Shown: positions 23,990 through 28,360, counted from the stretch's first letter. The stretch: 32,000 bases of DNA from Wallemia ichthyophaga EXF-994 (GCF_000400465.1 NW_008806274.1:480244-512243), one strand, 5' to 3'. The notes: a model not told the origin generated them from the sequence alone. Numbers and translations: made by a program.

Positions 23990-25916
23990 CTAATTATCTT
24001 TCTTAGATATGGACGAGTTCATCTCGTTCACAGTCTGTCTCAGTTTGATTTCATCGTTGTCAAGTGGTCTGTCCTTGTTTGATTTGCTGCATCTAGCACT
24101 GCTATGCAACGCCAATGCCCTGTCACGCACGATAGCCGCACTCGCAGAGTTATCCCATATAGCTATCTTGAAAAGCCTAGCAAAGATACCCTTAATTACG
24201 AAATGTCCGTGAGAAGCTACGAGCGCTGCGACAAAAGCTACTAAGACACCACCATGCGCTGCGAGTATACCGCTATTTTTGAACGACGTATTGAAGAGAA
24301 TGACGAGTGATGTGTTGATCATTGCACTGAGCCAGCTCAAAAACGACAAAGCGTCGAGCCATGGTCCAATACTATCCGTTGAACGGGGTATACAGCGACT
24401 ATAATGTTTGATGAGCTTGAATGCGTCTCCGCGAATTTCAAAAAAGTTGTTGATCAGTCCCATGAGTGGTGCAAGTGGCCATGCGACACTCCATAGCGAG
24501 ATAAAGCCGAACTGAATTGGTTTAGTGATTTTTTCAAAAAGCAAACGAAACACACCTGCGTAACCATCTCCGCATAGTCCTCGAACAGATCATATGTATC
24601 CTTAGCGACTTCCTCTCTGACGGCTTGCAGATAATCTCTCTCTTCTGGAGCGTCTTTCGGGGTGTAAGTGTTCTTGGAGATGTGCGATCTAACGAAGGAC
24701 ATGATATAGGGAAGACCAACTTCTTGGAAGGTACCAATAGCTTGAGAGGTAACCATCTGCGCGAACAGCTGCGTCTGTATCCTACTTCCATCAATCTCTA
24801 CTATCTCATTTGTGCCGAATATCTCAAACTTCTCAAATCTCTTTGATGCCGCCTTCACCAGATCCTTACCGAAGGGTATATACACATATGCCGTCAACGC
24901 AAGACCGGCAAAGCTGACAAGAGAGTTGAGAGTGAAAGACTTTATGGTCAAGCTTGCCTCTGTGTCGCTGTGCGTGGCGTGGTTTTCCCATCTACTCAGC
25001 TTGTTGAGCACGGGTTGATATGCAGTGATGAGCAGCGGAACAATACCGCTGCATACTGCACTCAATATGAGTGACTGTTTGAGTGTGTTAGACGTTGGTG
25101 TCTTCGACACTTTCTACCCACAATGTACGACTTGAGAGGACCGTTGTAGAATTGTAATCCAAACTCCTCTATGAAGAAGATGCTGAGTTGTGTGTGAGTT
25201 TATAACAGCCAGAAACACCACACACACATGGTGAGTAGGGCAGCCAATAGCATGGCGAATAGCGCAAGGACAGGAAGCGTAGCCATTAGCTTACTCTCAC
25301 GAACATACCACGCCGTTCTTTCTCTCTCTACTCTGGTCAATTCGATGCTCTTCGAGCCATCAGAACCCCACTGCACGCTAAGAGCGCGTTCCGCTACACG
25401 CCAGTACTCGACGAAAGCTACAGCGTAAAGACTAACGAATATGGCGTAAAATGAACTAAATTGAGAGCTCCTAAACCAGCAAAAAAAGCCAATGAGGGAA
25501 GGCAAAATAAGTGACCTAAAGTAAGACCTCAAGAAGGCGAAATAGAAGCCAACGTTAACACCAAAGGCATTCTTGATGCTTGTGAGCTGTTGGTTGGATA
25601 AAAGATAACTGCTAGTCAAGTCGCTAATTAATGTTTTGTTGAAATCGTGATTGTGGGGTATGACGACTTTCTTCACGTCGGGTGATGCGTAGTGGACCAT
25701 GAAATAATCGTAGAGGTTATTGCACTCACTGTCTACACTCCGTCTAGTAGATTGTTTTGCTTGTAAGAATGCCAAGACCTCGTCGTCGTTGGAGCCGGGC
25801 CTCACAGCCCAGCTGAAAGAGCTCTGGAGTTGGTGGAGAGCCTTCAAATGAGCGTCGCTGCTGCTGAGCTTGTAAACGACTATGAGATCAACTTTCGCGG
25901 TCTCGAGACTGGGCAT
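23990..25916 (-). CDS. IST2: Anoctamin/TMEM16 family (Ist2-like) channel/scramblase, 596 aa, 4 exons
   Basis: Exons 25916-25228, 25182-25122, 25074-24556, 24511-23990. [84 protein letters not shown] are typical anoctamin motifs. Confidence 0.92.
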
Positions 25917-27236
25917 TGTTGTGGTATCTGTGAGAGAGGCGTTAACTGAGCTATAAATAGATGGCACTTGAAAATCCTATGGTTATTATTAGCTGTGTTA
26001 GAGGTACTGGGTCATGGGCTCTTTCGGTGTTCTGACTGTCAACTGGTCGATCAGTTTTCTTAATCTGCATTTCAAAGCATATCTTGGCATAAGTTGATGT
26101 GCGAGTGCGAGTGCTTGTGCTGCCAAAAGACACGACGCCTTTCTACTCTCAAACTTCGACGCATTAGACGTGCCAGAAAATTACTTCAACCCAAGTGGGG
26201 TAAAAGTTGGTGAGGTTGAGTGATGAGGTGGCTGTAAGGTGGAAGTACTTAGAGAAACTCATTTATCGCGTTTTTATACATAATTATTATGATGCTCGAG
26301 GCACAGCCTGGCATGAGTTTATTCAACAACAACGGTATATGATATCTAATCAAATTCTTAAAGTTGTATCGAGCCATGCCAATAGGGTCAGAGAATTGTA
26401 TTGCAGCTTATGCTCTGATTCCCGTCACTGGGCCCTCTGATCTCCAATTGAGTGGTCGTGCATAGCAAGCTGAAGAAAGGAAGGGCAAGAACAAAACAAA
26501 TTCAAGGTTGGAAATAATCAGTGCTTCAACTCGCGGCACGCCCAACCTCAAATCCCCGATTTCCTTCCAATCCGCAACGAATCATCGTTAGACGTGTTAT
26601 GTGGATTGGTAAAATTGTCTTGAATTATTCCTATCTATTTCAATATCCAAAGTATTTTTCTGCAAGAAATGATGATGATGATAAAATCTGAATATATTGT
26701 GAAGACGATAAATGTTATAAACTGCGTCCATCAATACTTCATAAAGCATGGGGAGTCAAAGGGGGGTTGCTGAATTTACTGAAAGTTTTTCTTAAATAGC
26801 GTCGTAATTTGTAAATTTATGGTGGTTCTCAATTACATTGAAACACCGGTTCTGCGAGATGATGAAGTTTTGATATTATTTACGCGCAATTTCTGACTTA
26901 TCAGCAATTCTGTAAACGTCTTGATCTTTGTGAGGTGAAACTGCACACAAAGAGCAAGGCGCTGAGATTAATAAAAGAATTAAGTCTAAGATGTATCAAA
27001 AGAAAAAGTAGTCGTTTAAATAGTTTAGAATTCTAGGTTTTATTCCCATTGTCTCGTTATCTTCATTGTCCTCGTGCATAATCATGCATAATCTTCATTG
27101 TTCTTTATTCTCATTGTTCTCATAGCGACCATGATGTCATGTTACCTGTTCCTGCATCTTGCCCGCTTTATTACCTACGAAGGTAGGGGCACATGCTTAT
27201 AACTTCAATAGTACGACTGGTACAACTTGCTAGTTC

Positions 27237-27316
27237 ATGATGAGGTCCCAGGTTCGATCCCTGGTATCTGCATAGACCAGCAGATATAGCTCAGTGGTAG
27301 TAGCGCATCACTAGTA
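27237..27316 (+). tRNA. Circularly permuted tRNA-Thr(AGT) gene: 3' half 27237-27272, 7-nt linker 27273-27279, 5' half 27280-27316
   Basis: The re-joined sequence GCAGATA TA GCTC AGTGGTAG TAGC G CATCA CTAGTAA TGATG AGGTC CCAGG TTCGATC CCTGG TATCTGC A is a 73-nt cloverleaf. It has a perfect 7-bp acceptor stem, 5-bp anticodon stem and 5-bp T stem, C32-U33, anticodon AGT, A37, the Thr identity pairs G1:C72 and C2:G71, A box TAGCTCAGTGG and B box GGTTCGATCCC. No complementary half exists in the normal order nearby. Confidence 0.9.
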
Positions 27317-27325
27317 ATAAATTCA

Positions 27326-27338
27326 TTTTTTGTTTTTT
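27326..27338 (+). terminator. RNA polymerase III terminator (T6-G-T6)
   Basis: TTTTTTGTTTTTT begins 9 nt after the end of the tRNA 5' half. Confidence 0.8.
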
Positions 27339-27648
27339 GCTGCCTTTTATTAATTAGGCCGATGTCATGACACATCTTGAGTGTAGTATCGAGTAGAGTT
27401 TTGGTTAACTTAATTTTTACGCGTTGCTTCAATCATTTGCCTGGAAGGCGGGTTGCTTTACAAAATTAAATGATGATGCTCTATGAGATTACCACGGATA
27501 TAAGTCTAGGCAGCACGCCAGACCAATCGGATGAAAAGTTACTCAACCAAGTAGCATTAACATCACGCTTTTAGACGTGCAGAAAATCCAGCGAAGCTGC
27601 ATATGTATATTTATACAATAAAAAAGTGAGCCAAGTGCACAGACAAGT

Positions 27649-28360
27649 TTACTCGTCGTCCTCTTCAGCCTCACCGTCACCGCCTTCAGCAGCAGCAGAG
27701 GCACGGGCGCGCTTACGCTTAACGCGACCAGGGCGAGCGCCACCGTATGGAGAGGTTTGAGAGAAGTCAATGTGCTTTTGGGAGTCGAGTCTGTATAGAA
27801 ATCAATAAACTATCGAGTAAAAGAAAAGGCGTAATACTCACCTCACAGTGAACGAAGGGACGTTGACGATCTGCTTACCAACGCGGATGTGACGTTGAAC
27901 AATGAGCACACGAGCGTGGTGGATCGACTTGGCAAGACCGCTCTTGAAGACCTGAGTCTGAAGACGACGTTCCAAGAAATCTTCAATCTTGAGAGCCAAT
28001 ACGTAATCGAGACGCCTGCACGAGGAGAACCGTTAATACGTTTATTCGTGACAGTGGACTTTCTCTTGAAGGGTTTAATGCCACTCACATTCTTGATTCG
28101 TCAAGTACACCAATACGCACAAGACGTCTGATCAATGCGTTACCTTCGAAAAGACGCTTTGGTTCCTTCTCATCGAGCTTGAGGAGCTCACGGGCAGCTC
28201 TACGGATCTTTGACAAGGTGAAAGCGATACGCCAGATTTCACGCTTGTTACGGAGACCGTATTCACCAGCGAGCTTTAACTCAGCGTCCAAACGGGCTGA
28301 TTCGAATGGACGACGTGGGACCTTGTAAGTCTTGCTGTGATTTACTGGCGCACGTGGCAT
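27649..28360 (-). CDS. RPS9: 40S ribosomal protein S9 (uS4), 195 aa, 3 coding exons
   Basis: Exons 28360-28089, 28015-27842, 27790-27649, with 73 and 51 nt introns. [82 protein letters not shown]. Confidence 0.98.

Follow-up and report, generated by a model that had tools for sequence, protein, structure and literature searches.

The 32,000-nucleotide stretch of DNA analyzed here (the window) carries on its plus strand a tRNA-Thr(AGT) sequence whose two halves stand in reversed order: tRNA positions 38–73 come first and are followed by a 7-nt spacer (TAGACCA) and then by positions 1–37 (window 27237–27316). This permuted arrangement is real and lies far beyond chance. We tentatively read it, with a confidence just short of an even chance, as a functional circularly permuted tRNA-Thr(AGU) gene with a 37/38 junction (type II) in the nuclear DNA of Wallemia ichthyophaga. 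This halophilic basidiomycete belongs to the Wallemiomycetes, and its compact genome measures 9.6 Mb. The arrangement, the quality of the cloverleaf, the signals in the flanks, and the invariance of the locus between divergent haplotypes were observed, and from them we infer every step of the pathway by which a tRNA would be made. The original prediction took the DNA to be fungal, and this was confirmed by an MCM6 that is 100% identical to that of W. ichthyophaga and by the identity of the window over 11.4 kb to scaffold KE007224.1 of EXF-994 (L033).

The 3' half (27237–27272, plus strand, as are all features given here; A38-TGATG-AGGTC-CCAGG-TTCGATC-CCTGG-TATCTGC-A73) contains the 3' strand of the anticodon stem, the variable loop, the T arm, the 3' strand of the acceptor stem, and the discriminator base A73, and the B box (GGTTCGATCCC, 27251–27261) lies inside its T arm. 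The intervening sequence TAGACCA (27273–27279) links A73 to G1 and would close the acceptor stem as a loop. The 5' half (27280–27316; GCAGATA-TA-GCTC-AGTGGTAG-TAGC-G-CATCA-CT-AGT-A) contains the 5' strand of the acceptor stem, the D arm with the A box inside it (TAGCTCAGTGG, 27287–27297), the 5' strand of the anticodon stem, and loop positions C32–A37 with the anticodon AGT (27313–27315). Both boxes are perfect consensus matches and stand in reversed order, the A box downstream of the B box. A TATA-like element (CTTATAAC, 27196–27203), a candidate TFIIIB/TBP site, is located 34 nt upstream of the 3' half and is followed by a putative leader (27204–27236) that includes UUGCUAG (27227–27233), the complement of the anticodon-loop sequence CUAGUAA (27311–27317). 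The trailer (27317–27339) consists of ATAAATTCA and then T6-G-T6-G, a candidate RNA polymerase III terminator in which the first T6 (27326–27331) begins 10 nt past A37 and is separated by a G from the second (27333–27338). The halves, the spacer, and the T6GT6 stretch described in the original prediction are thus read exactly so at 27237–27338. For comparison, CTAGTAATGATG is the junction sequence of the conventional order in a tRNA-Thr gene, and CAUCACUAGUAAUGAUG is the sequence to be spanned in a mature tRNA-Thr with the acceptor stem GCAGAUA/UAUCUGC. In the definition of Soma et al. (2007), a permuted tRNA gene has its 3' half upstream on the same strand with a spacer at the acceptor end, halves that rejoin into a cloverleaf of recognizable isotype, a TATA-like element no more than approximately 50 bp upstream, and a T-stretch downstream, and the locus has each of these features. 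The definition also includes a bulge-helix-bulge formed by leader and trailer at the junction, which the predicted fold at this locus merely resembles, and expression by way of a circular RNA to a mature tRNA ending in CCA.

Neither ARAGORN nor Rfam at its gathering threshold called a tRNA across the whole 32-kb window, in keeping with the expectation that a standard tRNA scan would miss the locus, and a permissive Rfam scan matched the 5' half alone (22.3 bits, threshold 29). When the 5' half was rejoined to the 3' half, the resulting 73-mer was identified by ARAGORN as tRNA-Thr(agt) and aligned without gaps to conventional 73-nt tRNA-Thr(AGT) genes, the differences in the stems being compensatory; the predicted rebuilding of a 73-nt tRNA-Thr(AGT) was hence borne out. 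We also used a covariance model of the permuted layout that was trained on 4 conventional genes from other organisms, the window's own sequence being excluded. This model matched 27237–27316 over its full length (72.2 bits, E = 1.1e-21) with 20 of 20 pairs standard, and conventional genes scored under it gave half matches of just 31–40 bits. A search with a permuted model, of the kind suggested in the original prediction, thus succeeded at this locus and returned no match in the loci searched from relatives.

The D arm of the 5' half (GCTC-AGTGGTAG-TAGC) exceeds the most frequent form in length by one base. Scanning JGI metagenome contigs for this D arm together with the Thr(AGT) anticodon loop gave 7 loci, 5 of which are conventional tRNA-Thr(AGT) genes with T-run terminators. 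Since the same D arm occurs in conventional fungal-type tRNA-Thr(AGT) genes, we rejected it as a sign of decay; the peculiarity is normal for this type of tRNA, and the sequence is therefore not degenerate. An exact scan of the JGI metagenomes for the T arm plus acceptor gave zero matches, and a protein search with the minus-strand ORF crossing the permuted junction found nothing. Rfam also placed a YrlA (Y RNA-like) hit at 27226–27321, which we discarded: its 20.3 bits stand against a threshold of 69, and the hit mirrors the order of a T arm followed by a D arm and gives no evidence for a Y RNA. Folding the putative transcript without constraints gave an unremarkable z-score of -1.38 and did not recover the full cloverleaf; in this fold the acceptor helix was closed over the spacer with an 8-nt hairpin loop that included A73.

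To look for the missing halves, we aligned the leader to the 5' half and the trailer to the 3' half, locally as well as anchored, and scored the results against shuffles and other non-coding windows. No significant similarity was found, either unanchored or in register (p = 0.26–0.9). The alignments were no better than those of shuffles or of other non-coding windows, and we rejected the idea that the flanks are decayed missing halves; because no decayed remnants are present, the block is cleanly bounded. Tandem, dimeric, or decayed tandem tRNA genes were rejected on the same values and because two copies in series were not found. The claims that GCAGATA is absent upstream and a T arm absent downstream, and that the locus is not two normal genes in tandem, thus withstood the leader and trailer comparisons. 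The sole extra matches in the flanks are CTAGT (27230–27234), similar to C32–T36, and AT (27317–27318), similar to A38–T39. As ACTAGT is palindromic, the CTAG of the leader could be a remnant of homology and could equally be an element that pairs with the anticodon loop. A 226-bp segmental duplication bracketing the locus (repeat pairs D3 and D4) was not significant and was attributed to chance. Just upstream of the promoter-like region there is a short degenerate tandem or dispersed repeat (27054–27123) with units such as TCTTCATTGT and TGCATAATCA, and a sequence look-up of 2 small ORFs in the vicinity (27098–27202 and 26833–26946) found neither on record.

These flanks bear on the main alternative, to which we assign a sizeable probability somewhat below an even chance: that the layout, though real, is an inert relic left by a recent rearrangement of tRNA-Thr(AGT) copies, one that is intact because it is young and that yields no functional tRNA or just abortive transcripts. 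Such a relic could have formed from a tandem pair 7 nt apart, in which the outer half of each copy was lost, or as a fragment of approximately 1.1 units from a tandem or concatemeric copy. The short terminal redundancy formed by the CTAGT and AT matches resembles the ends of a fragment slightly longer than one unit, as in the second route. The first route, however, demands 2 independent clean deletions that left exactly complementary halves and no remnant, which is improbable.

Whether the block exists as assembled is a separate matter. The EXF-994 reference was built with SOAPdenovo (K = 21) from short reads, and the strain genomes of 2019, including GCA_004917865.1 (L032) and GCA_004918345.1 (L039), were built with IDBA-Hybrid (k up to 120) guided by that reference. 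The layout could thus be an assembly artefact, either a tandem array, collapsed to one unit, in which conventional tRNA-Thr genes recur at an 80-bp period with incomplete copies at the ends, or a chimeric path through shared tRNA k-mers; we consider this improbable. It would fit the positions at which contigs stop, since many strain contigs end short of the locus at 27027–27130 and Logan contigs end at 27291 and approximately 26700, and it would also fit the origin of the data, purely de novo confirmation covering the point where the 5' half meets the trailer, and the leader, 3' half, left junction, and spacer resting on the reference and guided assemblies. However, the junction at which the 5' half passes into the trailer was seen in 4 de novo k = 31 Logan assemblies of SRA runs, in which T12–A37 are identical and are followed by ATAA and a T-run. 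The Logan contigs from the RPS9 side all end at 27291, and an A/C variant (27321) follows at a distance of exactly 30 nt. A k = 31 variant bubble therefore explains this stop, which we rejected as a repeat signal because sharing with a conventional copy or an array cycle would place it at 27289. The remaining breaks coincide with an (ATG)n microsatellite (approximately 26700) or lie around a polymorphic retroelement insertion site (27012–27023). The same layout is present in L032, which is nearly identical to the reference, and in L039, which represents a divergent haplotype, and the 3' half, spacer, and 5' half are identical in the two. L039 has variants of its own up to 27217 and again from 27321, and a k of up to 120 exceeds the 80-nt unit. 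In addition, all 3 junction k-mers must be present in the reads, and an array flanked by a half-copy on each side would be at least as odd as a single unit.

Some features of the region surrounding the locus were also recorded. All short-read contigs from the anoctamin side break at the (ATG)n/(CAT)n microsatellite (26665–26746), and the sequence adjacent to it also opens the contig of a relative (L004, 1–45) and resembles both a W. mellicola segment (L031, 47–119) and the 3' end of the retroelement in L034. The latter is an 856-bp insertion found in strain GCA_004918895.1 (L034, 120–975) approximately 215 bp upstream of the tRNA block (window 27012–27023); with a 12-bp target-site duplication (CTATTTAAACGA), a (CAT)n tail, and a Cys/His-rich ORF fragment, it resembles a 5'-truncated non-LTR retroelement. 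Four SRA samples (Logan contigs L008, L009, L015, and L016) apparently hold both alleles at 27321, because every contig ends exactly k-1 before this position. W. ichthyophaga is treated as haploid, and these runs may be strain mixtures or metagenomes, or may come from strains with 2 copies of the region.

We then considered how often the flanking signals are expected. Among non-coding positions in the window, a run of T5 or more within 12 nt of the element end occurs at 2%, a TATA-like motif at -50 to -15 at 9.5%, and the two jointly at 0.16%. Three trailer haplotypes were found (ATAAATTCA-T6, ATAAC-T8, and ATAACC-T6), each with at least 6 T within 5–10 nt. Between EXF-994 and L039 there are 23 differences over the 1,683-nt intergenic region (1.4%), 12 of them within 150 nt of the block (4%), compared with a genome-wide SNP density of 0.13–0.40% in W. 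ichthyophaga. No difference falls in 27218–27320, a stretch of 103 nt that includes part of the leader (27218–27236); L039 variants run up to 27217 and resume from 27321. At the local rate, an invariant 80-mer has a probability of approximately 0.04 for this one locus in 2 haplotypes, yet the same invariance between EXF-994 and L039 is seen in 42.5% of all 80-nt windows taken across the intergenic region. A conserved body within divergent flanks is hence a suggestive signal in these sequences and not a decisive one. The TATA-like element, which is readable in the L039 haplotype, is unchanged there although positions 27192 and 27195 just upstream of it differ, and 4 of the 5 upstream differences are transitions. 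Actively transcribed tRNA genes have a conserved body, unusually divergent and transition-rich flanks, and a dip in divergence at the TBP site, a signature established in animals and one plant, not in fungi (PMC6130373). The pattern at the W. ichthyophaga locus, read from one locus and 2 haplotypes, matches this signature and would be consistent with transcription.

The same comparison weighs on the relic in both directions. That a difference-free 80-nt stretch is common across the intergenic region (the 42.5% given above) agrees with an inert sequence, and a relic that arose in place would have inherited a native promoter and terminator without any selection. A relic placed by random insertion, however, would owe the T-run, the TATA-like motif, and the leader complementarity to coincidences at 2%, 9.5%, and 7%, respectively. 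The layout is, moreover, older than the separation of haplotypes whose neighboring 300 nt differ by 4%, and still 103 nt are unchanged, and a T-run was retained through the turnover of the trailer in 3 haplotypes; both observations argue against an inert sequence.

If the locus is a functional permuted gene, its expression would proceed as follows. The upstream TATA-like element would recruit RNA polymerase III, with a start at approximately 27220–27230, and the transcript would consist of the leader, the 3' half, UAGACCA, the 5' half, and the trailer, stopping in the T6 run at 27326–27331. This RNA would fold into a cloverleaf in which the 7-nt spacer loop closes the acceptor stem and the anticodon loop is open. 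The tRNA splicing endonuclease would cut after A37 and before A38, and a Trl1-type ligase would join A37 and A38, producing a circular intermediate. RNase P would then cut 5' of G1 and tRNase Z 3' of A73, CCA would be added, and A34 would be deaminated to inosine. In favor of such a gene are its exact and complete anatomy, a junction at the canonical intron position 37/38, a spacer of 7 nt that is within the known range (intervening sequences of permuted tRNA genes measure 1–74 bp; PMC3978253), and a leader able to form a 7-bp helix with the anticodon loop.

This helix was recovered when the fold was constrained to the cloverleaf: 27227–27233 paired with 27311–27317 (7 bp), leaving UUCA (27234–27237) as a bulge of 4 nt, not 3 nt, at the 3' junction. 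The 5' junction was placed inside the helix, so that the 5' cut site can be base-paired, and the outer helix was weak; the central 4-bp helix (27230–27233 with 27311–27314) is perfect and can be extended to the 7 bp. The energy gain of the leader/trailer pairing was -6.6 kcal/mol, a value equalled by 7% of shuffled flanks. The predicted leader/trailer fold is thus only BHB-like, not a canonical bulge-helix-bulge, and is marginally better than that of shuffled flanks. This non-canonical BHB and the reversed order of the boxes speak for an inert relic. Fungi normally depend on TFIIIC, and reversed A and B boxes should not suit this factor, so that TATA-directed initiation must be assumed in Wallemia. 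In budding yeast, tRNA splicing is cytoplasmic and end-processing is nuclear, and a permuted precursor would need an unusual itinerary between these compartments.

The 2 perfect boxes also raise the possibility that the locus is transcribed or bound for a purpose other than making tRNA-Thr: the A box could give rise to a short RNA that covers the 5' half and ends at the T-run directly 3' of it (a tRNA-half-like RNA), or the B box could serve as a TFIIIC-binding chromatin element. The divergence of the flanks would agree with this as well, as it indicates transcription and not necessarily the production of a tRNA. However, such a product leaves the intact, adjacent 3' half and the acceptor complementarity unexplained and is less economical than a functional gene or a relic, and we regard it as very improbable.

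Relatives were searched near the syntenic genes. Neither a half-tRNA nor a permuted match turned up in W. hederae (L030), W. mellicola (L031), or the relatives represented by Logan contigs L004, L010, and L012; as synteny around the locus is broken and the closest relative's intergenic region was covered in part, this result holds for the loci searched and not for the genomes as a whole. An ortholog in a related species, which would mark a functional tRNA gene, was accordingly not found among the loci searched. The gene order anoctamin-[tRNA locus]-RPS9 (window 24454–28360) is not kept in W. hederae, where no RPS9 lies within 3.3 kb upstream of anoctamin, or in W. mellicola, where no anoctamin lies beside the nucleotide-sugar transporter gene. 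By this comparison of gene order, the intergenic region that hosts the tRNA locus appears to be itself a lineage-specific junction. The lack of an orthologous copy in the sister species examined and the lineage-specific anoctamin-RPS9 junction are both consistent with a young locus, as the relic requires. The relic would also agree with the presence of further tRNA-Thr genes: the W. ichthyophaga reference annotation holds about 11.55 kb of tRNA genes, which we estimate to represent approximately 140 genes (range roughly 130–150), and other copies of tRNA-Thr(AGT) therefore probably exist. The published W. ichthyophaga transcriptome was obtained from standard cDNA libraries with fragments of approximately 200 bp. 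The proposal in the original prediction that this is a functional permuted gene consequently stands in part: the invariance of the block between divergent haplotypes, the T-run in every haplotype, and the TATA-like element kept in L039 speak for it, and the non-canonical BHB, the reversed boxes, the lack of an orthologous copy in the loci searched, and the probable existence of other Thr(AGT) copies speak against it.

The closest known counterparts are the type II permuted genes of green algae of the Ostreococcus/Micromonas type, the Bigelowiella natans nucleomorph, and Cyanidioschyzon merolae (Soma 2007; Maruyama 2010; PMC3978253), in which the 3' half likewise precedes the 5' half on one strand. 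They have in common with the Wallemia locus a short spacer at the acceptor end, a 37/38 junction in the anticodon loop, an AT-rich or TATA-like sequence upstream and a T-stretch downstream, halves that form a canonical cloverleaf, and a CCA that is not used as encoded. The Wallemia locus differs from them in its basidiomycete host, in that a single such locus and no family was seen, and in its predicted 3' bulge of 4 nt instead of 3 nt; furthermore, the circular intermediate is here a prediction. Transcription is a further point of difference, given the TFIIIC dependence of fungi noted above: C. merolae is without recognisable TFIIIC subunits that bind the A and B boxes (PMC3978253). The permuted order is also shared with tRNA-iMet and tRNA-Tyr of Thermofilum pendens (Chan et al. 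2011, as summarized in PMC3978253). According to that summary, the iMet gene has a 7-bp intervening sequence, as in Wallemia, an AT-rich promoter is predicted upstream, and the T. pendens genes differ in having their junction at 59/60 in the T loop, an encoded CCA, and archaeal transcription and splicing machinery.

Split tRNA genes, described in Nanoarchaeum equitans and other archaea, resemble the Wallemia locus in that the halves are encoded separately and the break is often beside the anticodon. The split halves, however, come from distant loci and are joined in trans via complementary leaders, whereas the Wallemia halves are adjacent and would join in cis through a circle. Dimeric tRNA genes are known from yeasts, namely tRNA-Ser/tRNA-Met-i of S. 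pombe, with a 7-bp spacer, and tRNA-Arg/tRNA-Asp of S. cerevisiae. Like the Wallemia locus, they present a tRNA 3' end that is succeeded a few nucleotides later, and without an intervening terminator, by a tRNA 5' end of the same strand; unlike it, they consist of 2 complete tRNAs, while Wallemia has 2 halves and no remnant of the other halves. By analogy, a dimeric tRNA gene is a plausible evolutionary precursor of the Wallemia layout, matching the tandem-duplication model for the origin of permuted tRNA genes (PMC3978253).

Reviews of 2014 (PMC3978253) and August 2026 confine permuted tRNA genes to certain unicellular algae, nucleomorphs, and archaea, and such genes have been discussed either as leftovers from the early evolution of tRNA or as peculiarities of particular lineages that go with unusual transcription and splicing machinery. 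A full-text literature search returned no report of a fungal permuted tRNA gene, and neither review names an opisthokont case, in agreement with the original prediction, which knew of no fungal example. The locus might be, at a probability close to but under one half, the first example of a functional circularly permuted tRNA gene among Fungi, and among opisthokonts as a whole. It would then be a known kind of gene in an unexpected kingdom and in a basidiomycete whose genome is otherwise ordinary, and would imply that ordinary fungal splicing endonuclease, Trl1-type ligase, RNase P, and tRNase Z suffice to process a permuted precursor via a circle and that a tRNA gene whose A and B boxes are reversed can be transcribed by RNA polymerase III when a TATA-like element lies upstream to direct it. 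It would further imply that permuted tRNA genes arise sporadically outside algae and archaea, unseen because standard finders cannot call them, and that tRNAscan-type gene counts can miss real genes. As the locus appears species-specific, a working gene would mean that permuted genes can arise recently, and an early stage of the tandem-duplication model or of an RNA-mediated origin would have been captured. Being short and cleanly bounded, and with an acceptor stem (GCAGAUA) that may be distinctive, the locus lends itself readily to tests by sequencing of tRNA or by introduction into laboratory yeast. Even if inert, it would give a rare and clean view of the way in which a permuted layout comes about.

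Two of the tRNA-Thr(AGT) sequences in JGI contigs deserve mention in their own right. In contig Ga0247809_1033317 (L022, minus strand, approximately 1075–1233 in plus-strand coordinates, corresponding to 943–1101 on the reverse complement), the T arm of a tRNA-Thr(AGT) that shares the D arm of the Wallemia locus is split, at approximately 53/54, by an 85-nt insert that starts with GTATGT, contains ACTGAC, and ends with CAG. These signals look like those of a spliceosomal intron, and excision of the insert restores a 73-nt tRNA (ARAGORN) that is followed by a T-run; the insert is either the insertion that killed this copy or a non-canonical intron, the latter in a nuclear tRNA gene of probably fungal origin. 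In contig Ga0247773_1086118 (L023, 381–476), a tRNA-Thr(AGT) with 2 mismatches in its acceptor stem, which may be a pseudogene, carries at the canonical position a 23-nt intron with a CTAG complementary to the anticodon loop, a complementarity that this intron has in common with the Wallemia leader.
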